DNA of 64,000 nt. Origin: Paragordius varius. Taxonomy: Eukaryota; Animalia; Nematomorpha. The first letter of the stretch is position 1; each line of letters starts with the position of its first letter. Location of the stretch: the NCBI GenBank assembly GCA_964247055.1, contig OZ176052.1, positions 1,054,001-1,118,000 of the forward strand, written 5' to 3'. Below, one piece after another: positions 12,481-29,216 of this stretch. Both the position numbers and the translations under genes were made by a program. The notes below the pieces were generated by a model. That model had not been told where the DNA came from and did not search any database. It worked only from the letters and a program-made list of their open reading frames with translations.

Positions 12481-13441
12481 TAATCAAGCCATATGATGCA
12501 TATTTTTCAATTAAGTGAAATATTATGGATGATATTAAAGTTTTATATAATTAATTTTTTCCATTTTTCCATTGTAATGTTAGTATTACTAGATAGTAAT
12601 TACTCTTTTTATTGACCCATTTTTAATTCAGCCCATTTAGCCGAATTTCTCATTTAAAGGCATAGTTTTTTTAAAAACTATGTAATTGTATTAATTTTTT
12701 ACATTCGATGTTACTATGTTAGTATTGCTATATAGAGAATATTTTTATGCGCATCTACCCAATTTTATGAGATTCAGATAACTGTACACCTCAACAAACG
12801 ATTATGCCTAAATTGATATTAACTGAATATCGTATTATTATAAGGCCGCCTTGTTTTTAAAAATTAATTTATCTAAATATAAAAGTATAGAAGCTATTTC
12901 AAGGCAAGTTAAAAATCAGATTTATATTCTATAATTTGCTTTCACCATTTGACAAAAAATTTGCCAATTTTATTTCACATTTAAAAATATTGGCTTGTTG
13001 CTACACAATAAAATATTAAAAATATTGGTATTTGTATGCTTTGAAAAATATTAAACAAATAATTTTACCGCGCGGTGGTAAAGGTAGGAAATTAAAAATA
13101 TTTTTACCCACCTTTATTTTAGTTTTGCTCTTTCTCCCCATACAAAAGATTCTATTCTTATGGCAAAAACTAGATGATCGTTTTTATCTATTTTCTTTTA
13201 TTAATTGGGTAAAGAAAAGATAGAATAGATTTCTGCCTAATTATTATTAATGAAATCAGCCATTGCTTTTTCATAACTATACAATTTTTTATTATAATAT
13301 ATATTTGTAATGACAACAGTTAATAAATATAACATCTCTTCTAATTTTTGATATATCTTTTTCGGAATTTTAAAAATCCACATATCCCTCTTTTTAAAAC
13401 TCGGGAAAATGGTGGCGTTTTACCTGTTACAATGCAATAAA

Positions 13442-16400
13442 ATGACAAACTTATTGGTCTTCAGGAGTTTTACTTACCTTATTTTCTGGATCTATTCTTT
13501 GTGGAGCGATAAAACAGTCGTTGAAAGTCGATACCTTAGAAATTTTCCAACGAGTCAGCTGGTCAGTTTAGGGGACCTGAATATAGGCGCCCTCTACGAA
13601 ATTTATGAACGGAATGCCGAACGCGGTGTAATGTGTAGCAACTCCTACAACGATTATTCCATAGTTAATGCACTGAGCATTGTATATACATTGGGGGTTT
13701 GGAATGAACGATTATTCCAACCCGAATACAACCTTACCATTGGGTACGTTATGTTACCTACCTGTCGTAAACAGGGTACTTCACAGGTAATAATTTTAAA
13801 CATGTAAAAAATTAAACAAATTTAAGGATTGAAAACAAAATAAAGGTGGCAAATAGTTTTTGCAAAGACAACAATTTTTTAAAACTTGATTTTTTTCTCT
13901 CCCAATTGCCAAATATATACATTGTGGTACTATCTTAAATCTTTCCATCAAATCGATCGGTTAAAGGACTTTTTTATAATTTTTATTTAAAAAGTTTTTA
14001 CGTTTTGTTTTCATTTTAATTTTTACTGTATTTTCCATGTAATTGTTCCCTTTTTTGTAAACCATATTGTAAGGCCGTAATCGTTCAAATTAAAATATAT
14101 AAGCTTTAATAGGGTCAAAAACCTTCTATTGAAAAATAAAAATAATAATTAAATTTTTTAAGTGTTAGTTATTTTTTAACAACAAATAGTTTGATCCATT
14201 TCTATAATTTATCTCATGTAATAAACATAGGAAACCATATTAACTGCTTACGTTTTTAAGCGGCCATACTATGAAAGGCATAATATCTGTGACCTAACTA
14301 CATATATTATAAAGTTAGGTTATAACTACCAGGTGTAGTCATAAGTTATTACCGGTTTAACTAAGAGAAGGCGGTGATGAAAAATGCACCGACGATTAAT
14401 TTGATATAAGTCTTATATCATGCATTAAATTACGAACATAAATTGAGTCAACCAAAAGATAGCGTCTTGCCTGAAAAACATTTACACAACTTATTGCTTT
14501 TCTCAGTAAGTTCAGAAGAAAAAGGATGTTAAAATCATCATTTGTTTGGAAAAACATATGGTGAACATGCCCGCTCTATTGATTGAAACATGTACATAGT
14601 TTCGAAAATTCAAAAGTTGTGATTTCGATGCGAAAGACAGTCGGTACTTTGGCAGCAAGCTATTGGATGATGATCCAACTCAACCCAAGAGCAATTGTCA
14701 GAAGCCTATCACAAAAAACACTCAGCAGATGTCTACGAGCAACGATAAAGACCAATAAACTCGGTAAAGGCACAAAATTTGGATCAGAAATCGCAAAGTG
14801 ACTATTTCATTGAATTGTGAGATTATTTAAGATGTGGCGTTTATTTGCAAATTTAAGCGAAAAATGTGGTTTTCAACTCGCCACCGGTCTATCAACACTA
14901 AAGCCAAATCAATTCGGTAAAACCATGTATGTCTGGGGGGACCAGAGGGGTTTTGTATATTACCAGTTTTGGAAGCCTAGTTTAACCGATGCACAACGGC
15001 ATCGCTAACAAATGTTTGATTTAAACCATGTATTAATCGAAAAAGACCAGGATTGACCAGAAGACAAGGCAAATTATTTTGCATGACAATGCTCCGTCTC
15101 ACACAGCAAAATTAGTTAAAGACACCTTAAAATCGGTTCGTTGGGAAACTCTTGCATTCGTATCCGACGTACTCTTCAGACCTGGCGCCATTTGACTAAT
15201 AGCTCTTTGAATCAATGGGGCACCCCCTCGCAGAATAGCACCTCAATAATTTTGAAGATGTTGGAAAATGGCCTGACAAATGGTTTGCCAAAAAGACAAT
15301 CAGTTGGGACAGCATTCATTTATTAGCTGAAAGATGGGAAGAAAATATGTAGAAGCTGGAAAATTTTCTAATAAAATAAAAACCGTTTTTTAAGATAATA
15401 CAGTTTTCGTAGTAAAAAAATTGGTAAATATTTGAATAGTACTATTTAATTAAATCTTCATTCCCCTACTATGTGTATTATGCCAGTTTCATTTAAGAGC
15501 CCTTTAAATAATAAATTTTTAAATGCAAATTGTTTCTGATTAGATTCAATGCATCATATTGAATTCAATCAAAGATCGTATCCATTTACGCGGAATAATT
15601 GGGCCAACATCTAGTTATGAAAGTAGATTTATTTCACCCTTTTTGGGTTTTCACGAAATACCTCACATTAGCCCTGAAGTTAACTCTGCAAGCTTAACGG
15701 GACGAGCGTAAGTGTCATAATTACAAATATAAAATGAATAAAAGCATATATATATAAGAGACGCTGCGCGGTTATTTATAACTCGAATATATCATTATGT
15801 ATTAGTTGATAATAATGTTCTTTTCTATAGATCTTTTACCATTTTTACAAAAAATAACATCAATATTGTGTTTGTAGGGTTATAAATAAGTTATGGGGAT
15901 ATGTATCTTACAACTTATAAAATGACTAATTGATATTTATCCGTTATCGTAAATTATATTATGGTATTAACCCATGTTACATATTCTCTTTACTATTTAG
16001 TTATGAATATCTGTTTACCATTATCACCAATCAGGAAGTTTATTTGAACGGAATCCTTGATTTATTCCAATATTTTGGATGGAATCAATTTACCATTATA
16101 TATTCGGAGTATCCTTTTTATCATTGGTTCGTACAACAATTGAATCAACGAACCCCTAACCTAAAAATGTGTATACTAGATACTATCATGATACCTTTTG
16201 AGATTATTTTTACGCAAACATATTCAAAAAAATCGCCCAGTATTGAAGAATCTTTCAGGGAACTGCTTCAAAGACCAGGGCCCCAGTTAGTTGTACTTGT
16301 TTGTTCTCTCAACCATCTCCTGTATAGCTTAGTGCGCTTAAAAGAACTTAGTGCTGAAATTGCGTATAACAAGCAGTTGTTATTTGTTGGCTTGGACACC

Positions 16401-18706
16401 TGGCCTTCGACCTACAACCTACGTCTGTATAATTTGACCGATTTCGCAGCTGGCTCCATAGTTATATATGACATAACGACGGATAGTAATTCGTTTCGGG
16501 ATTGGTTAAAGAAATTATCATCTATGAATACGTCCTTGACCCAATACCCCTGGGTTTCTCACCTCGATGCCAACTTACAGGGGCTGAGTGAAGAGGGTCT
16601 TTCCTCCATAGTTGATGACAGAGTCTCAACTAACATAGATGCGGCTACGGCCATGCTCTATGCCATAGATGATATTATACGTGGGGAATGTAAGAGGTTT
16701 GTCAGTCAACCCAATGCTTCTCCGAACAAGAGCGAATTAGTTTCATGTGTTTACGCAGCCAATCTCCGTAATTACATCCTTAATGTCAGTTTTAACGGAC
16801 TTACGGGGCACGTGAGTTTTGGTCGGTCAAGACCATTGGAGACCGATGATCGTTTCACGCTAAGCTATGGAAACTATTTACAAATCGGTCATCAAAACAA
16901 TTATAGCTTAGGTCGTCATGGGCAGCTGCTGGAGAATCGAACCGTTATCATTAGTCGACCCTTTGTTTGGAAGAATTATTCGTTTGCTACGCAAATTGAA
17001 GCACCCCCATTCCGATGCACTCCACCCTGTAAACCTTTTGAACAAATGGTAACGCGTGACAAAGTATGTTGTTGGGGTTGTCGCACATGTGGAAGGCGAC
17101 AAATTTTTACACCGCCTGAGGCGTTAGCTAATAATAGCTTTAATCCTTGTATGTCATGTCCGCCATTTACATGGCCCGTATTTAATCTCACGTATTGTCG
17201 AGCCTTACCCATTGCACATGTCAACAGTGTTAGATGGTATCCTTTTTTAGTGTTTCTTGGAGTCCTGGGGCTTTTACTAGTCATTATACTTCTCATATAC
17301 TATGTAATCTATCGGAACACGGTCAAATATCAATTCGAGTACCGTCCCTTGCTTTATGCGCAATACTTAGCAATACTGTTGGGATTCATAGCACTTTTCC
17401 TGTTAATTTCAAATCGACCCAATCCACGTATTTGTGGAAGTGCTACTTTCCTGTATCTTATAACTGTAGCTTTGATACTGGGCGTTATATTGGCAAAACA
17501 ATACATTATATTACGGAAACAGAGGGCTAAGGGAAAATCAGCCAGATCAATTGAAAAAATGGGATTTGTCTTGTTGCTTATCATTGTCATTGTGCAGGTA
17601 TTAATTTTCTTCTATGATAAAACATTTATTTTAAATGAGGAAAAGAGTTTTTTTATTATTCTTGTTTACGAAACATAGGTGCCAAATTTGTGTTATTATT
17701 AATAACTTATTTTCTCTATTTTTTTCACATCTAGATAATTTGGATAATCTTGGATTTTGCCGATGGCACCTCGTCCTATAAAGTTGAAATAGTTCCAGAT
17801 AGTTTTCTTACGTTTCTGGACACGGCCAGAACAAATATTATAAATGCATCGGCCACAACTACGCCGATAGTAAAACGAACTTGGATAGCAAGGTTACAGG
17901 AAAGGTTTGCAATGGCCGAAAGCGCCGCACAAACGCAAGAATTTTGCATGCCTTATTTGTGGCCTGCTGAATTACTCATCTTGGGTATCATGTATCATTT
18001 GGTGCTTATAGTCATCATTTTGATACAGAGTGTCATCCTTTATCAAACATTTTTCCAGCGCTACAAGGAGATTAATAAGTTACAAGCTCAAACTATCATA
18101 ACTATACTCTCGTACGTGGTTGGTGTCCTGTTTTATTACATATGGGTCGGGCTTAGGGCTCACATATGCATATTGCTAGTGTTTTGTATCATTCTTTTCA
18201 CTCAACTCTATTTTGCGTTTGCCATTTCCAACGTACTTCGCGGCGGTCAACGTGTTCCCATGACAACCTCAGGAGCAGGGGGTGGCGGAACTGCCAATAG
18301 TATTCCTAACAGACCCTTAACGCCCCGAAAAAATTACCCGTCTAGCATGAATAGCGATACTAAAATAGGAGTAGACGACGTCTCACCTCTAAATGATAAC
18401 ATGAACAATAACATAGCTACTAATCAGCCTGGAGACCTAGACTTAATATCAGACCCCCAAATAATTGATCAGAAAAATATGGAAAAAGCAGGGATGATGG
18501 AAAATGAAATGGTTTACGGTGCCGATTATGGGGAGGAGCCCAATGAACAAAAAAATGAAAATGAAAAAGATGAAATAGCTATTCATGATTATGATGATAA
18601 TTCCACAAACACGAAAAATGTCGCAGTTGGTGACACAGTATTAACTGCTAATGATGAAAAAATTAATGATATTAAAGGCATTGATGATAAGAAGAAAATG
18701 GATTGA
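13442..18706 (+). CDS. Divergent class C (mGluR-like) GPCR, 4 exons (13442-13786, 15544-15707, 16001-17597, 17735-18706), 1025 aa; alternative start 13409
   Basis: Signal peptide; Venus flytrap motifs GDLNIGAL, TIG..LPTC, GIIGPTSS, IPHIS, FGW, FNGLTGHVSF; nine-Cys domain CTPPC..CCWGCRTC..CMSCP..WP....YC; seven hydrophobic segments; acidic C-tail. Exons sum to 3078 nt. Confidence 0.9.
14329..15452 (+). mobile_element. Decayed mariner (DD34D, Mos1/mauritiana-like) in GPCR intron 1
   Basis: Left end TA-CCAGGTGT (Mos1 TIR starts CCAGGTGTAC). Fragments FRKFKSCDFD, KPNQFGKTMYVWGDQRGFVYY, HDNAPSHTAKLVKDTL (15082), YSSDLAPFD (15170), SMGHPLAE, LAERWE. Stops and frameshifts present; right TIR degenerate, so the end is approximate. 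Confidence 0.9.
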
Positions 18707-20816: not shown

Positions 20817-23800
20817 TTAAAAAGGTTTATATTATATAGCATTATGATTTATACATTTTCTTGTATATATAAATCTCAGGGGATCCAGTTTATGTGGGAA
20901 TTTCGCTACGCATCTCAAATTTTGATAGTATGTCAGAAGTCAATATGGTATACTTGCTGTTCTTATTTATAATGTCATTTATTGTTTTTTATCTATTATA
21001 TACAAGTGTTTACATAAAGTATTTGGTGGTTTTGAAAAAATAGCTATCTATAATTATAGGATTAGCTAAATATTTGGGATTTTTAAGGTTTTTCACTTTT
21101 TACTAATACCTCCATTTAATTAATTGTCTTAAAACCACCCTTTGGTAGTTAATTATTTATTGCTTTAAAACTTTAATTTTCTAGAAAGTCTATTACAGCA
21201 TTTTTATAAAATCATCTGGTCTCAGGGTATAAAAAATTAATATCCAGCGTTTTCGTATTGGAACTACTACTGGGTTTTAAAATTTAGCAATAGATAGTGA
21301 GACATTTTGGCCATGTCGCATGTTTATAAAACAAATCGAATCAAATCGTCGTAAACTAATGTCAAAAATGATTTTAATTAAAAAGAGTTAAGTTAGGTTA
21401 TTGAAATGACAGGAAAATATTATTTTTAATTGATGTAAAATAAATATTTGTTTTTATTACTGGTTAATTTTTAGTATTTGAAAATATATTATGTAAAAAA
21501 CAAAGGAGTGGCCATTGATATTTTCTTCCATGTAATAGTATTAACAATTTAACCCTAAAACTGATATTTATGAAGGGCGCGGTTTCGTTAGGAAAACGAT
21601 AGTCCAGTTCAATTTTATAATTATTATTTTTGCCACTTGATAGAAGTTTTTTAATGTTTTATCTTTATGCCGGCACCTATTTTTAAATAATCCCTAACAA
21701 AATTTGTTAGATTAAATGTTTCCGATTGTATCTTGGTTTTGGATTATTAATTTTCGACTCTAACTCTTAAACATTGCCATGATATGGCTTTGTCTAACAT
21801 TATTTTTCATAAATTTTAGTCATCAAATACAGTATGAGTAAATATACATTGCTAGTTTTTCATTTAGCATTGATTACTGGATAGTATTTACAGTAATAAG
21901 CAATATTTTAGCCTAAAAGCGAGAAAAAATAAATAAATTTTTAATGGTTTTTCCTTATTATAAGGGCTCCAGTACCCCTGCCTTGTTACAGTAAATATTG
22001 AAATTATACGGATGAAACGGCAAAATAAAGACAAATTTTTTTTACAAAAAACATCCCCATACTTTTTTAAGCTGGGATTATTGCTATCATAATTCATCGT
22101 TTTAGGTTGCAAAATAAGGAGTAGCGACGAAATGGATAATTTCTCAATTACATAATAATTGGGAAATTATAAAGTTTATTTAGAAATATCGGGATTCAAA
22201 AAGTATGGTTGTTATATAAAAAAGATGATTGTCTTTTAATTTCTACATTTTGTCCGTACAATTTAAATTTTTCCTGTAAATTTATAAATATCACTCTAAA
22301 CCTAAAATGCTTTTAACTTTAAAAACAATGACCTTATGGGAAATTCGAAAAAAGTGCCTGAATAACCAGCATAAAATAAGCCTATATTCCCCTTTTCTAA
22401 GAGAGCTTATAAACGACATTTTTAAAAAAAAACATATTCATAATTTTAGATATGAAATTAAAATATTTTAAAGCTCTTAATTTTATTTTTACAGTAATTG
22501 AAATTATACGGACGAAACGTAAAAATATAAAGACAAATAGTTTTACTTAAAAACAACCATACTTTTTAAAACTTTAATTTTTCTCATAAAAGCTATTTAG
22601 TTACAATTGTAAAATCTAGAATTGATTGTGTTAATAATATATATCCCTACGTTTTGACATTTGGAACAATGAGTTATATTGAAATAAATCAAAATTTAAA
22701 TAGTATGATTGTCTTTTTTAAAAAAATATTTGTCTTTATATTTTAACATTTTGTCCGTATAATTTCAGTTTTTACTGTATATTTATAAAATAGGATTATA
22801 CAATAACGCTTTTGTTGTACCAATATTGGCGCGATGACAGACTAGATTGGGGAGGGAATCCAAATACCAGAATATCTTTGCCAGCTTCAGTTTCAGAAGC
22901 CATTTGGGTCCCGGACACCTTTATAGCTAATGATAAAAATTCTTTCCTGCACGAAATCACTGAAACCAATAAACTTATATGGCTGTATGGAGACGGTACA
23001 ATTATCTATGGGTTAAGGTAGTGTAATTTCACATTTTAATATGTGGTTAAAAACTTTTCAGGTTTAACTTATAATTCTGCCACTGTAAAAAGAGATTTGA
23101 AATTATACATTATAAAGTAACTCTTGTTTGTTTTATATTATCTAAAAGATTCACTACAACGTTGGCATGTATGATGAATTTGCGAAATTATCCATTGGAT
23201 GAGCAAAATTGTACCGTAGAGATAGAAAGCTGTAAAATTTTTACACTTTTATTATTATTGAATATCAATATTTTTAGGTGCTTAATATACAGTAAAAACA
23301 AAAAATGGCCATATTAAAAAACATTTAATAAACACTTTATTGTTGGCCAATAAAATTTTTGCCAAATTATTTTAACAAGTAAAGCTAAAAGGAAAGAAAA
23401 GGGCAGACGACGAGTTGTTATAAATTTGAATGGAGGAGTTATTAAAAACTTTTTTAATACCCTTTAAGATTTATAGTCTGCTTACCTACCTATTGTGTTA
23501 AATAAATATTTTAATTTTACAAAAGATGGTTACACAACCTCAGACGTCATAATGTATTGGCATGGGAATGAATCGGTTCAAGGCTTAAATGAAATGAGTG
23601 TATCTGTGTTTGATCTTAAAGATCACAATGTTATAACCACGTTAGAATCTTTACCCACAGGTAATTGGCAATTCTAAATTTTATGGATATGGATATTGTA
23701 AAAAGATTTAAAATACATAACAAGTTAAAGGAAATTTTTCATCTTCTTTTGAATTAAGCCTTATGCATTTTCTTTTATACCGCCCAAAATTGGGGTCCGA

Positions 23801-26800
23801 AAATTCTGGTTGGACAAGAAGTTAAACTACCCACAAATAATCCCTATTATAAATATAATTTTTTTGCTTTTTTTATTTTTTTCCCCTAAATAATTCCCTT
23901 AAGCCAATAAGAGGTCTTTATGCTAATATTAATTCCATTTATTTATATATAGGTGATTATCAAAGATTATCTCTTAGTTTCCATTTTAAACGTAACATTG
24001 GATACTTTATATTCCATACATATCTGCCCACCATTCTCATAGTTTTATTGTCATGGGTGAGTTTTTGGATAAATCATGAAGCCACCTCAGCTCGCATAGC
24101 CTTGGGTAAGATTATTAATTAAACAATTTTCGAACTGAGATGGAATTTTCAAATTCCGATTGAAAAGGGCAAATAGGATGGATGTTAAATTTTTACCCTT
24201 TTCTCATCCATAATTGAAACAAATACAAGTATTAAATCATTTCTTTTTTCAATGATAAGTTTTCGTCATAATTTTTTGACACTTTTAGATTCTAGAACCA
24301 ATTTTCATATATATACCATTTACAGTTCAAATTCACCCTTGAACAATTCGAATTCACCTTAAAAATAAACTATGTGTTTTCGAACTAATATAACTCATTA
24401 TTAATATGAAATATATGTTTATCGTATAGTTTATTTTCTTCAGTATTTTTCAATTTAAAACAAAACTTTTATTTTTTAAAAAAAATATATATAATATAGG
24501 TAATTTTTAATCTTAAAAAATATATATTTTATTTGAGGGTGAATTTGAATTGTTTGCGGGTGAATTTGAATTGTTTGAGGGTGAATTTAAATTGTTCAAG
24601 GATGAATTTGAATTGTTTAAGGGTAAATTTGAATTGTTCAAGGGTAAATTTGAATTGTTCAAGGGTGAATTTGAATTGTTCAAGGGTGAATTTGAATAGT
24701 TTGAGGGTGGATTTGAATTGTTCAGTGAATTTGAAAATTGAATTGTGAATGGTATATATTATATTAGGAATTACAACTGTACTAACCATGACAACTATCA
24801 GTAGTGGCGTCCGATCTACATTACCTCGAATCTCGTATGTTAAGGCCATTGACATTTACTTGGTTGTGTGTTTTATGTTCGTTTTTGCGGCACTTTTGGA
24901 ATATGCTGCAGTGAATTACACTTACTGGGGCTCCAAAATCCGTGAAACGAAACTATCCCAGGAAAAATTTCCATCAAAAAAAGTTTCAAATTCTGACAAA
25001 AACAAAAAACGATTATCGCCGACTCTTATAAATAATAAGAATGCAACAGACACAAAGCTACAATGGGCTGCTCAATACTTAAGAAGGGCTGGGAAAAATT
25101 CAATCTTTGGGCATTCTACCCTATTAAATGGTGCTAGTCACCATCTTACAACACATAAATGGCGGACAACTGGGAAAAAGACCACCCCTAACGTTATGGG
25201 GCATGTTGGAGCTCAGAAACGAAAGAGTATCGTGGCAAAACTTATGCAACCAGCTAAGGATAAGGTTTTTAAGGTTAGTCTAAAAAAATATGTGAATATA
25301 AACTGATATAAATTTTTTGTATAAAAATGTATATGGTACATAAGCCTGATGCTAAAAATTTTTTATTTAATTGATTAAAATTACCTAGGGATTAACCAGA
25401 TTGTATTAAATTTAATAATTAAAAATTCTATATTTAATTAATTCTTATTAGAGTTTTATCAATGGTATCTATATACCATATGTCGAAATTAGTAGAAGTA
25501 TATAGATGTAAATATTATAAATCCATTTAAATTAAGGAAAAACCATCAATGTATCACAAGAAAAACAATGTCGTACGAGATTTCAAACCCGCAAGTAACG
25601 AAGGGAGCATAAAAGAAAAACGAGAAACGTTAACCGATGATGATATGTTGTATGTTTTGCACTTAAAACCTGTCCCTATGCTCGTGAGAGGCACGGGTGA
25701 GATTTATGCCTCCGATGATGTCATAATCAAGGAAAATGGTGACAAAAATGAACAAACAGTATATAGTTTTAATTTTAGTTTAAATTAGCATTTATTTAAT
25801 AAGTCAACTAATCGAAATGCGCATGCATTATGTTAATAGCCTACACCCTAAAACTCTTTTGATAATTGCACATAGCGATAGATAAAAATATTATAATAAA
25901 TGCTCCACAAAAACCTATTATATAACGGTGTAAATATTATCTAAGGTCCATAAGTCTCACCCTTTGTGCCTTGTAATAGTGGATAAAAATATTAGATTTT
26001 AGGTTTTGATTATTTATATTCGAAATAAGTTTGAAAAATATATGATGTATTTTATAACGACAAATGCCATTATATAATAAATATTTTTAACCATATACAT
26101 TCATTATGAAATACAGCAATCTAGCACCCCAAAACAATCCGTAATAGCACAAATGTTGGGCGTGAAAAAGAAACCATCGTTTAGATTGATGCCAACAAGG
26201 TTAAGTCAAGCTGCACATTACAAAAATATGATGGATAAATCGGTTCTAAGTCATTGGGATTTACTTAATCCTTGGTCGTCCTCCATCATAGAAAATTCTG
26301 GTGAAAGTTATGCCACTGAAAAACACTTTAGGGTGGACCCAGAAATGAAAGAAGAAAATGCTTGTGAAGCAACACTACCTATAAAACAATCAAAAAGTTT
26401 TGCAGATTTTAGAGATTCCCCTAATCTAATGGCTCCTCAAGACAAAATGGATTCAATCGAAACAGAAACAGCTGTTAAGGAACCAAGTAAAATGAAAAAA
26501 GCTCTGATATTTGATAAATACTGTAATGATCAGCAGCATAATAAACAACAACCTGCAAGAAAAAATCATAATTTTCCAATGTCGCAATATCATAATGATT
26601 CAAATGAACTCTTGGGTGGTCGACGCTTCAAGAAAATGGCGACCGGAGTAGGTGGACAATTCAAGCATCAAGCCAAACGACTAAAACAGCTGATTCCCGT
26701 AATCACAAACGTGAATGTGATTGATAGATATTCTCGCATAATATTCCCTGTTTCATTTCTCCTCTTTAATATCGTATATTGGTTTTACTATGGCTGTAAA

Positions 26801-26818
26801 AGCAACAAATGTTTTTAA
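19262..26818 (+). CDS. Lcch3: Cys-loop GABA-gated chloride channel beta-like subunit (LCCH3/GAB-1 type), 10 exons (19262-19664, 20018-20167, 20880-20947, 22794-23017, 23149-23231, 23526-23660, 23953-24105, 24768-25273, 25537-25758, 26117-26818), 881 aa
   Basis: [38 protein letters not shown], Cys-loop [16 protein letters not shown]1 [11 protein letters not shown]2 [23 protein letters not shown]3 [21 protein letters not shown]4 [10 protein letters not shown]. Exons sum to 2646 nt; the M3-M4 loop exon boundaries are less certain. Confidence 0.93.
19704..19987. mobile_element. MITE family A (Tc1/mariner-type, ~285 bp), diverged copy in Lcch3 intron 1
   Basis: Inverted ends GAGATTATACAGACAAAA / TTTTGTCTGTATA resemble the other family A copies. 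Confidence 0.65.
21989..22276. mobile_element. MITE family A copy in Lcch3 intron 3
   Basis: TA-CAGTAAATATTGAAATTATACGGA...TCCGTACAATTTAAATTTTTCCTG-TA, with ~80-bp TIRs. Confidence 0.85.
22492..22777. mobile_element. MITE family A copy in Lcch3 intron 3, ending 16 nt before the exon-4 acceptor end
   Basis: TA-CAGTAATTGAAATTATACGGAC...GTCCGTATAATTTCAGTTTTTACTG-TA. CAGT termini with a TA target duplication are typical of Tc1/mariner. Confidence 0.9.
24314..24754. mobile_element. Fold-back element with TACCATT termini and subterminal 21-bp repeats; truncated inverted copy at ~39310-39505
   Basis: Left end TACCATTTACAGTTCAAATTCACCCTTGAACAATTC matches right end ...GAATTGTGAATGGTA. 39310-39505 is the reverse complement of ~24310-24525. 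Confidence 0.75.
24532..24745. repeat. 21-bp minisatellite (consensus GGGTGAATTTGAATTGTTCAA, ~10 units)
   Basis: Read directly; it produces the repetitive ORFs EQFKFTL / VNLNCSR in the track. Confidence 0.95.
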
Positions 26819-26917
26819 TTTTATAATTAAAGAGCCTAAATGAATTATATTTGCTGTAAAAACTAATTTATTCATGTAAATTTATTTATTCAAAAATTTC
26901 AATAACACAAAAGTTAT

Positions 26918-27106
26918 TCACCACAAAGTTTGATCTTCAGCAAGTTCCCGGTGTAATAATTGACTTTTATTTCTAAACTTTGTTTCACGAGAGCAACACC
27001 ATCTAAATTCGGCCCAGCCTAAAACTATTGCAAAAATGGCAACAGGTACATCAGAATACTTTTGGACCAAATACCTAACATCCTTGGAACCAAATTTCAT
27101 AACCAT
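26918..27106 (-). CDS. NDUFB1: NADH dehydrogenase 1 beta subcomplex subunit 1 (MNLL), 62 aa from ATG 27106
   Basis: LGWAEFRWCCSRETKFRNKSQLLHRELAEDQTLW aligns without gaps to human [35 protein letters not shown] (recalled). Confidence 0.85.
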   Translation of the reverse strand: MVMKFGSKDVRYLVQKYSDVPVAIFAIVLGWAEFRWCCSRETKFRNKSQLLHRELAEDQTLW

Positions 27107-27111
27107 GGTTG

Positions 27112-27280
27112 TTAGCTGGATTTTATTTTCTTTAAATACTTTAATTAAAGAATATTTTACCTTTTCAGATTTTTTGTATTCTTGCGTTAGTTGATAATCC
27201 TTATGGATACAATAAAATAGAAAAGCTGGAAAAGTTATATAGAACCAATTTTTCTTAACAATGGGATAATATCTAACCAT
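27112..27280 (-). CDS. Upstream single-TM micro-ORF (45 aa if the 31-nt intron 27160-27130 is spliced); in frame with NDUFB1 if unspliced
   Basis: MVRYYPIVKKNWFYITFPAFLFYCIHKDYQLTQEYKKSEK | GTAAAA...TTTAAAG | KIKSS*. The stop lies 5 nt before the NDUFB1 ATG. Confidence 0.6.
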
Positions 27281-29216
27281 GCAAAATAATCATTCTTTCG
27301 CTTTAAAATATGACATTTTGTGTATTTCTGTGTTTTGAATTTTAGTTGCTATTAAAACATGTAAAACTCGTTTTAAATATCTAAATATTGGGAACTTAAA
27401 CTCCATTTATCTAATATATAAACTAAAAAAGCGTAAATAACTGATTCTTATAACACTTGTGTTATAACTTTAAAAGCATTGCCTGACTTTACGCTTTCGC
27501 ATTTAGTAACTTTGGCTAATTTTTATTTATTAATCTATTTAATTCAAAATATGTAGTAATTTTTAAGGCTATATATGGATATATGGATTTACATAAATGA
27601 TTATCAAAAAACAGTTTCCAAATTAACAGAACCGGTTCTAGTTTAAAAAATTTTCAGGGAAATGATTTTGGCTTTGGCTTCATTGTTTTTCAGCGGTTAT
27701 CAATTAGCTCGAGTTTTATAGAATATATTATTTCACTGATTTATTTTTATGCTCTCTGTGTTTAGTTGCTAAGGGCGAGATTCAGTGCGGCTAACTATAA
27801 AATATTAAACTCCCCCGAACTACAGCTCGCTGATGAAAACAGATGAATTTTTAATATTTACGTTTTCACAATTACAATTGTTTGGCTCCTTTCCCGTTGA
27901 AATAATTAATGCAAAAACATTCATACATTTCTCAATTTATTTTCCCGTGTGTGGATGAAATCTTTGGAAATAATAGTTTTATGTATTTTCAATGTCGGCC
28001 CTCTTAATACACTGATACTATTGAAAAGGTGGCCCCGGTATCCGACGTTTACATTACAGATATCAATAATTAGAATTCCTTATATCATAATATAAGGAAA
28101 GCACTATATTAAACGTAAAATATATAACAATAAATCAGATAAAGGAGATAAAAAATACAAAAATTATTATTATAAATCTCCGCATTCCTTAAACAAAATT
28201 TTTTAAATGAATATATTCACTAGAAAATTCACGGATTCGATCCATTTGTTTAACTCGTTTGGAGCCGATTTGTCTAGTTGAAAATTATGGACTAAAAACA
28301 TTTTCTAACTTTGCGATTCCGGCATGCATCTGTAACGACTTTCAACTTATGATTTATGCTATGAATCCAATACAAATGACTTGGCCGGACTCATTTTCGA
28401 CTCCAAAAGACCAGGTTGCATCTTTTTAAATATAAAAAAATTTTACTCTAAGAACCTGTTGTTCTTTATTTTTTAAGGAATTATTAGTTTAAAAAAATCG
28501 TATAATCAAGTGTTTGTGTATTTCCAACAACAGAAAGTATCCTTGATGAAATAAGACAATTATATTGGGCAGAAATTAAAATTTTATAAGAATATTCTCA
28601 TAAATTAAAATTTCTAATTTTATTTGATTTTTTAAAGATGGCGGGCCGCACAAAAAGTTACGGAGAGGCACATGTTGTCGCTGATCTATACGATTTGATG
28701 CTCATTTAGCATTCGTACCTATGATTAAAATATAATTTCAAAGAACCGGTTGTTTTTAAACAAATTAATGTCTTGATATAAAATTATTCCAATCCTGTGC
28801 AGACGATTTTGCAGATTATGTCATTAGCAAAATCATCTATATTCATTGTTATTTCCAATAAAAGCGATTGATTCGATTTTCAAATTTTCATATTAAATTA
28901 AAATAAAATGAGATGTAATTTTAAATCAAAATATAACAAAAAGAAAAGGGTGAAAAACGTTAAAGAATAATCTCTATAAAATACCTTTTTCAAGTGGCTT
29001 TATTATCGGTAAAATTTCTGTGAATCGCACCAAAATAAATAGTTTAAAACCCAAATTAAACCAAGCGCGCCATCGCGGTTTAAGATAACAACCCTATTTG
29101 CATCCTCCTTAATACACCCCTTTTAAAAGTTAAATTTGAACGCATATGTTTTTTTATATACATTTTCATTTAGTTCACTATTAAATACTGCTTTTTATCT
29201 TAACTATATAAGTTAA

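Follow-up and report, generated by a model that had tools for sequence, protein, structure and literature searches.

A probable NDUFB1 (MNLL) gene with its homology in two segments, and a possible second isoform start, in the hairworm Paragordius varius

The 64,000 nucleotides of Paragordius varius DNA that were analyzed here (the window) contain, on the minus strand, a locus that is best read from its homology as one NDUFB1 (MNLL) gene and not as two decayed tandem copies. The reading that we favor, tentatively, is that of a single gene in which an upstream exon is spliced into a downstream ORF and in which a downstream ATG gives a second isoform of 62 aa; the transcription of the upstream exon, the splice choice and the making of both products are what we infer from the sequence. 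Positions 27280-27211 would encode the canonical N-terminus, together with the beginning of the single membrane helix, and the end of the downstream ORF would encode the canonical C-terminal loop. Since the ends of NDUFB1 lie in two segments, the standard subunit would have to arise by in-frame splicing that joins the upstream exon to a site within the downstream ORF, either from a putative donor at 27210 to an acceptor at 27025 (58 aa) or 27019 (56 aa), or from a putative donor at 27160 to an acceptor at 26978 (59 aa). The DNA that would be removed in this way includes another ATG, this one with a strong context, as well as another hydrophobic segment, and as it is coding-looking and free of amino-acid changes between haplotypes, the 62-aa isoform is probably translated. 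This isoform, with another N-terminal half and the same C-terminal loop, would come from unspliced or internally started mRNA.

The open frame is 120 codons long and runs from ATG1 at 27280 to a TGA stop at 26920-26918. An in-frame TGA is found 4 codons 5' of ATG1, and the second start, ATG2, is codon 59 of the frame (27106). Given the stop-codon frequency of the window, an open run of 58 codons 5' of ATG2 has a probability of ~0.014. The features of the locus are as follows:

26918-27280, minus strand: 120-codon open frame from ATG1 to TGA, uninterrupted only in the window's haplotype
27211-27280, minus strand: upstream exon core, codons 1-23 plus 1 nt, with the predicted canonical NDUFB1 N-terminus and start of the membrane helix
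27161-27210, minus strand: 'tail' of the upstream ORF, codons 24-40, coding or else the 5' portion of an intron; begins with the candidate donor 27210
27155-27160, minus strand: candidate donor AAG/GTAAAA, phase 0 after codon 40; the same hexamer is also a donor of the channel gene
27107-27160, minus strand: spacer of 54 nt, non-coding-looking, with the candidate micro-intron acceptors 27139, 27130 and 27116
26918-27106, minus strand: downstream ORF, 62 codons plus stop, with ATG2 in an ACCATGG context
27026-27106, minus strand: the downstream ORF's own N-terminal part, 27 codons, coding-looking and without detectable NDUFB1 similarity
27019-27026, minus strand: candidate acceptors AATAG/ (G at 27025) and TTTTAG/ (G at 27019), 6 nt apart and in phase with 27210
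26978-26980, minus strand: candidate acceptor AAG/, in phase with 27160 and followed by the codons for FRNKS
26921-26977, minus strand: conserved NDUFB1 C-terminal loop FRNKS..L..REL, from PF08040 and the solved chains
26867-26890, minus strand: two AATAAA signals 3' of the stop (26890-26885 and 26872-26867), the likely 3' end of the gene as read from the sequence

The window has a GC content of 21-39% and is animal DNA; its genes include a class C receptor, a Cys-loop channel, a sulfotransferase, Bud13 and an XK-related gene. NDUFB1 and the channel gene are arranged tail to tail and, because their stop codons are 100 nt apart, the 3' UTRs of the two probably overlap. The Cys-loop ligand-gated channel gene itself (22794-26818, plus strand; Pfam Neur_chan_LBD and Neur_chan_memb), which converges on NDUFB1, has AAAAG at two of its five acceptors and one donor with a T at -1. 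Within one of its introns (24513-24748) lies a tandem array with a unit of ~27 nt that is open in several frames on both strands, encoding repeated peptides such as FKFTLEQ. The class C (metabotropic-glutamate-like) receptor gene (13409-18706, plus strand) has a 582-codon exon, and its best relative among 5.8 billion proteins is 24% identical. In a TRUB2-like gene on the plus strand, the GT..TAG segments 880-911 (32 nt) and ~1048-1073 (26 nt) sit between open exon pieces and are plausible ultra-short introns.

PF08040 (MNLL) is the only Pfam family matched by the frame. The match covers the last third (E 2e-4 to 7e-4) and scores 21.7 bits with the 120-aa ORF, 20.7 with the 62-aa ORF and 19.6 with the last 34 aa, so that the gathering score of 27 bits is not reached by any single uninterrupted ORF. 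In a HMMER comparison of the whole 120-aa frame with solved structures, the NDUFB1 chains (9cwt_n, 6g2j_f and 5gup_n) were split in two alignments. In one of these, NDUFB1 residues 33-53 align to frame residues 98-117, the middle being skipped, which places the FRNKS..L..REL loop on the human, mouse and bovine-type chains (E 0.1-0.3). In the other, NDUFB1 residues 1-25 of the solved human, bovine-type and mouse chains align to frame residues 1-25, with 3.3-6.0 bits and an independent E of 110-750 among 177,635 sequences, i.e. ~0.0006-0.004 per comparison. HMMER does not carry the NDUFB1 alignment into codons 24-40. The downstream ORF, which also contains one hydrophobic segment (frame residues 75-96), carries the NDUFB1 C-terminal motif, as had been claimed in the initial annotation and as borne out by both PF08040 and the solved chains.

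The N-terminal similarity was also evident from direct scoring. Against three N-terminal NDUFB1 pieces the upstream peptide scores 38-42, which ranks it first among 364 decoys (all ATG-started open peptides of the window; mean 15.7, sd 3.9), and at most 1 in 5000 shuffles equals its score. The N-terminus of the downstream ORF scores 12-15 against the same pieces, which is background (decoy mean 15.7). In terms of protein-language-model features (Atlas), the nearest cluster to residues 1-45 is a nematode one at 0.92, and two PF08040 clusters follow, one at 0.91 and one at 0.90 with 182 features in common; the complete 62-aa ORF had no usable Atlas match. The family's N-terminal pattern (M1, V2, I7, V8, a basic residue at 9, W12 and P18, leading into the helix) is present in the upstream exon only. 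Taken alone, the upstream segment gave zero Pfam matches, either as the 23-residue core or as the full 40 codons. On these scores, codons 1-23 to 1-25 resemble the NDUFB1 N-terminus above chance. The matches to human NDUFB1 that the initial annotation had listed at M1, V2, I7, V8, W12 and P18 are reproduced by the HMMER alignment and the one at D28 by the solved NDUFB1 chains; its claim of an NDUFB1-like upstream N-terminus holds for 23-25 codons by HMMER, by decoys and shuffles and by Atlas.

The same annotation had viewed the locus as a tandem duplicate with complementary decay, and this view was abandoned. A local alignment shows no similarity between upstream exon and downstream ORF (p 0.27 for protein, 0.17 for DNA), the first 43 residues of the downstream ORF alone have no Pfam match and thus no MNLL match, and a tblastn search of the window with the 40-codon upstream exon yielded no additional copy. 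The locus thus holds one NDUFB1's worth of homology split in two, and a duplication is not supported.

A second haplotype allowed an estimate of constraint. The three sequencing runs that cover the locus look like DNA, because intergenic DNA is evenly covered and two haplotypes are present; one probable RNA run (X4) contained no sequence at the locus. Between a variant contig of 678 nt (26627-27300) and the window there are 21 differing positions and 2 indels. The most variable part is 26855-26914, in the NDUFB1 3' UTR, where 99 nt contain 6 substitutions and an insertion of 3 nt. Across the frame, codons 1-23 have two synonymous and no non-synonymous differences, codons 24-40 have no synonymous and two non-synonymous ones (H26Y at 27205 and E39D at 27164), the spacer (27160-27107) has two substitutions and a 1-nt insertion behind 27154, and the downstream ORF has one synonymous difference in its first 27 codons and four in its last 35, with no non-synonymous difference in either part. 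Both amino-acid changes and the indel therefore fall between 27210 and 27107, and the upstream 23 codons and the downstream ORF are without amino-acid changes, as would be expected from the coding capacity that the initial annotation had given them.

These differences amount to one haplotype pair (11 substitutions, 1 indel), and the tests on them were picked after the data had been seen; with that scope, the following values were obtained. All five differences in the downstream ORF fall on third codon positions and are synonymous (P 0.0003-0.001), which holds for this frame alone: in neither of the other frames is any of the five synonymous. The restriction of non-synonymous changes to codons 24-40 gives a Fisher p of 0.03 against the other segments. 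In codons 1-23, 2.9-4.0 non-synonymous changes are expected and none is found (P 0.02-0.05); in the downstream N-terminal part the expectation is 3.3-4.6, again with none found (P 0.01-0.035). At the non-coding rate of the haplotype block, which is 5.2%, zero non-synonymous changes have a P of 0.05 for codons 1-23, 0.035 for the downstream N-terminal part and 0.012 for the rest of the downstream ORF. Codons 24-40 and the spacer vary like neutral DNA. Just 5' of the gene, at 27271-27300, the contigs of both runs of sample S1 (X1 and X2) break, 20 nt 5' of ATG1: the contig of the variant haplotype stops at 27300, and a contig for 27271-28400 shows no differences and has a lower depth. The haplotypes may differ structurally here, at the place where the promoter is expected.

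Base composition and codon use gave a mixed picture. The exons of the neighboring gene have 36-39% GC and its introns 23-26% (0.25 +/- 0.06). At the locus, the spacer (GC 20%, codon score -4.6) is non-coding-like, and the downstream N-terminal part (GC 35%, +2.2, p 0.07) and codons 24-40 (GC 30%, +3.0, p 0.048) are coding-like. Codons 1-23, with background GC (24%) and a score of -5.4, come out as non-coding-like. Given that these codons are clearly homologous, the codon-usage score is unreliable on hydrophobic segments, and it was dropped as a general test.

The two starts differ in strength. ATG1 has a weak context (tgcATGg, T at -3) and ATG2 a strong one (accATGg), and the 171 nt between them contain no ATG, which holds for 3.8% of windows of that size (p 0.038). 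Together these properties agree with a two-product locus, and the lack of an intervening ATG suits a bicistronic mRNA better than the split-gene reading. The 27 private codons of the downstream ORF and its ACCATGG speak against a plain intron; they are compatible with leaky scanning along a bicistronic mRNA as well as with an isoform whose mRNA is left unspliced or starts internally. Further 5', an out-of-frame ATG at 27293 (minus strand) opens a 6-codon mini-ORF that overlaps ATG1 and ends at a TAG at 27275-27273, and an acceptor-like AAG/ lies at 27301 on the same strand; if in the mRNA, mini-ORF and site would reduce initiation at ATG1.

Several splice sites are conceivable within the frame. 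From donor 27160, the candidate AG acceptors 27130, 27116 and 26978 would give introns of 31, 45 and 183 nt and products of 45, 105 and 59 aa, respectively, and retention a product of 120 aa. The 31-nt splice places a TAA at 27114-27112, 5 nt 5' of ATG2, and the 22-nt splice 27160-27139 likewise leads to a TAA 5 nt ahead of ATG2; this 22-nt GT..AG segment starting at 27160 ends in TTAATTAAAG. Removal of 22 or 31 nt restores no conserved frame, as the shifted frame stops after 8 or 5 codons. Beyond the sites in the initial annotation, candidate AG acceptors are located at 27139, 27083, 27059, 27025 and 27019, and a second candidate donor, T/GTATCC, at 27210. The positions, coordinates and product lengths (45, 105, 59 and 120 aa) given in the initial annotation were all correct, including the TAA 5 nt before ATG2 after the 31-nt splice, and its core, an NDUFB1-like N-terminus 5' of NDUFB1 with several products possible, stands; the micro-intron switch that it proposed gained no support from these analyses. 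The site types match those of the neighboring gene, where the donors are GTAGTG, T/GTAAAA, GTAATT, GTAAGA and GTATTA, the acceptors are often AAAAG and AAG acceptors are normal. Donor 27210 is weak, with a T at -1 and a C at +5 and +6. A U12-type reading of it, defined by a donor RTATCCTT and a branch site TCCTTRAY 10-15 nt before the acceptor, was dropped: only GTATCC matches (AT follows, and the other haplotype has GTATCT), and before 27025 or 27019 no branch-site match was found. A 30-nt GT..AG segment with a CTAAC motif (27210-27181) was dropped as well, since its removal makes an immediate stop.

The joined products were compared with human NDUFB1 in alignments read by hand from the exon translations. 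On these, the 56-aa product of 27210 to 27019 would be gapless from M1 to the REL motif and adds R29, R34 and T36 to the matches. The allele of the other haplotype at 27017 makes a TGA junction codon if acceptor 27019 is used, so of the two neighboring acceptors only 27025 works in both haplotypes; the resulting 58-aa product would have two gaps against human NDUFB1, and all non-synonymous changes and the indel become intronic in this model. The splice from 27160 to 26978 has a good donor and an acceptor that is normal for the genome. Its 59-aa product would have a hydrophobic stretch of only 14-15 residues and three extra residues, and it loses the juxtamembrane G/R/R/T positions that are common with human NDUFB1. 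In a rough weighing, 27210 to 27025 and 27160 to 26978 come out even.

Among the other explanations, a bicistronic mRNA of the Sloth1/Sloth2 type is rather unlikely in our judgment. Here ATG1 would give a single-pass NDUFB1-like peptide of 45-48 aa (46 aa in the other haplotype if unspliced), ribosomes that bypass ATG1 would start at ATG2 to make the 62-aa NDUFB1, and a micro-intron of 22 or 31 nt may set the frame so as to end the first ORF 5 nt ahead of ATG2. The ATG-free 171 nt between the starts (3.8% of windows), the T at -3 of ATG1 as opposed to the ACCATGG at ATG2, and the TAA 5 nt before ATG2 after either micro-intron, which equals the Sloth1/2 gap (PMC9681215), are all in its favor. 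The 880-911 segment, which reads as a plausible ultra-short intron, the indel inside every candidate intron starting at 27160, and the unconstrained tail, compatible with a peptide that functions through its helix, point the same way. However, in the intermembrane space the C-terminal loop of NDUFB1 is in contact with NDUFB5 and NDUFB10 (PMC8762328), for which reason the N-terminal module is expected to need the loop, and a loop-less peptide would be unable to make these contacts. Moreover, the hydrophobic stretch of the peptide is 14-15 residues long with no 15-residue window passing the hydropathy cut-off, the two ORFs are not demonstrably paralogues, and removal of the micro-intron restores no homology. 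That one transcription unit yields two single-pass proteins of the NDUFB1 type that differ in their N-terminal and helix segments is, to our mind, quite unlikely. In its boldest version, a micro-intron of 22 or 31 nt would let a microprotein of 45-48 aa end 5 nt before the NDUFB1 start, and the two would form a pair like Sloth1/2 that works on complex I, at the ND2/ND4 lipid pocket.

A plain two-exon NDUFB1, composed of 27280-27211 and 27024 or 27018 to 26918 around an intron of 186 or 192 nt that is open by chance in one haplotype, would leave the downstream ATG and the 62-aa ORF unused. We regard it as improbable. In its favor, each family position is covered exactly once, the 56-aa product would be gapless against human NDUFB1, the acceptor is T-rich, the modules are mutually dissimilar, and all six exonic differences are synonymous, with both amino-acid changes, the indel and 3 other substitutions being intronic. 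In addition, a scan that selects long open frames is expected to meet an occasional 1% coincidence. Against it stands the 3' part of the intron, with an exon-like GC of 0.35, a coding-like codon score (p 0.07), a single change in 81 nt, which is synonymous (P 0.01-0.08), and an ATG in a perfect ACCATGG context; its donor at 27210 is weak and without a U12-type branch site, and with acceptor 27019 the 27017 allele leads to a stop. Distinctly improbable is that the 62-aa ORF is the sole subunit and the upstream ORF, lacking a stable product, the relic of an old first exon or purely regulatory. The downstream ORF is indeed complete, constrained and equipped with a strong start, and the upstream segment has a background GC of 0.24, non-coding-like codon use and, as core (23 residues) or full 40 codons, no Pfam match of its own; yet a neutral relic at 27% genome GC should not retain an ATG, an open frame and the conserved N-terminal positions, nor show 0 non-synonymous changes in codons 1-23 where 2.9-4.0 are expected (P 0.02-0.05). 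In-frame two-helix fusions of 120 aa (retention), 105 aa (acceptor 27116) or 94 aa (27083) are hardly credible. In the window's haplotype nothing interrupts the frame, and acceptors that keep it are present, but the fusions of 120 and 105 aa proposed in the initial annotation are not conserved, because in the other haplotype the insertion behind 27154 breaks the 120-aa frame and the CAG at 27116 is changed to CAC, by which the acceptor is lost. The spacer looks non-coding as well, and with two helices the C-terminal loop would come to lie at the matrix side, as against the intermembrane space in the solved structures (PMC8762328).

Searches for relatives returned little. Word-index protein searches with the 62-aa ORF and the 40-codon upstream exon gave no matches, the 120-aa and 62-aa products are absent as exact sequences from the protein collection, a metagenome scan yielded no relative, and an Rfam scan of 26000-28600 had no matches. 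The sole HMMER match of the 120-aa ORF among 1.84 billion representatives, a 288-aa tandem-repeat protein (P0001) that was hit four times, was judged to be due to chance, as it is without a hydrophobic helix and repeats inflate the score. Synteny via the neighboring class C receptor led to the 24%-identical protein only and to no related hairworm locus. A limited literature search turned up no alternative N-terminal forms of NDUFB1 and no bicistronic partner.

An accessory subunit with a single helix, NDUFB1 is specific to metazoans and required for complex I assembly (PMC8762328). If the locus does make two forms, complex I of this animal could swap its lipid-holding helix at the ND2/ND4 interface, and this parasite, whose life stages differ greatly, would offer a small, testable example of subunit switching. 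Should the locus be a plain two-exon gene instead, it serves as a warning that an intron in an AT-rich genome can stay open and mimic a tandem duplicate; gene finders would then probably annotate the 62-aa or 120-aa ORF and overlook the canonical N-terminus.

Compared with known systems, the locus shares with NDUFB1/MNLL (PF08040) a predicted product size of 56-62 aa with a single hydrophobic helix, the FRNKS..L..REL loop and the M-V-x4-I-V-basic-x2-W...P N-terminus. It differs in that the N- and C-terminal signatures are found in two segments ~190 nt apart and that the intervening segment offers a second start and a second helix. In UGT1A and the clustered protocadherins, alternative first coding exons are joined to a common exon. 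In a similar manner, alternative N-terminal coding modules would here share one C-terminal segment, although there are two modules only, these have no mutual similarity, and the proximal one runs on into the common part, which puts the acceptor inside the ORF. For NDUFB11, likewise a single-pass accessory subunit of complex I, a long and a short splice isoform are known that differ by a 10-residue insert (PMC8762328). Alternative mRNA processing would thus give two forms in both cases, putatively so at our locus, whereas here the whole N-terminal half, with most of the helix included, would be swapped. Finally, the Sloth1/Sloth2 pair of Drosophila (SMIM4/UQCC6 family) has two consecutive small single-pass mitochondrial ORFs with a weak and then a strong start, and for this pair a common transcript and the translation of both ORFs, by leaky scanning and across a 5-nt gap, have been experimentally shown (PMC9681215). 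Our locus has the same succession of ORFs and starts and possibly the same 5-nt stop-start gap with shifted frames, the latter only after removal of the putative micro-intron; in contrast to Sloth1/2, its ORFs are not detectably paralogous, and its common transcript and the products of both ORFs are putative.
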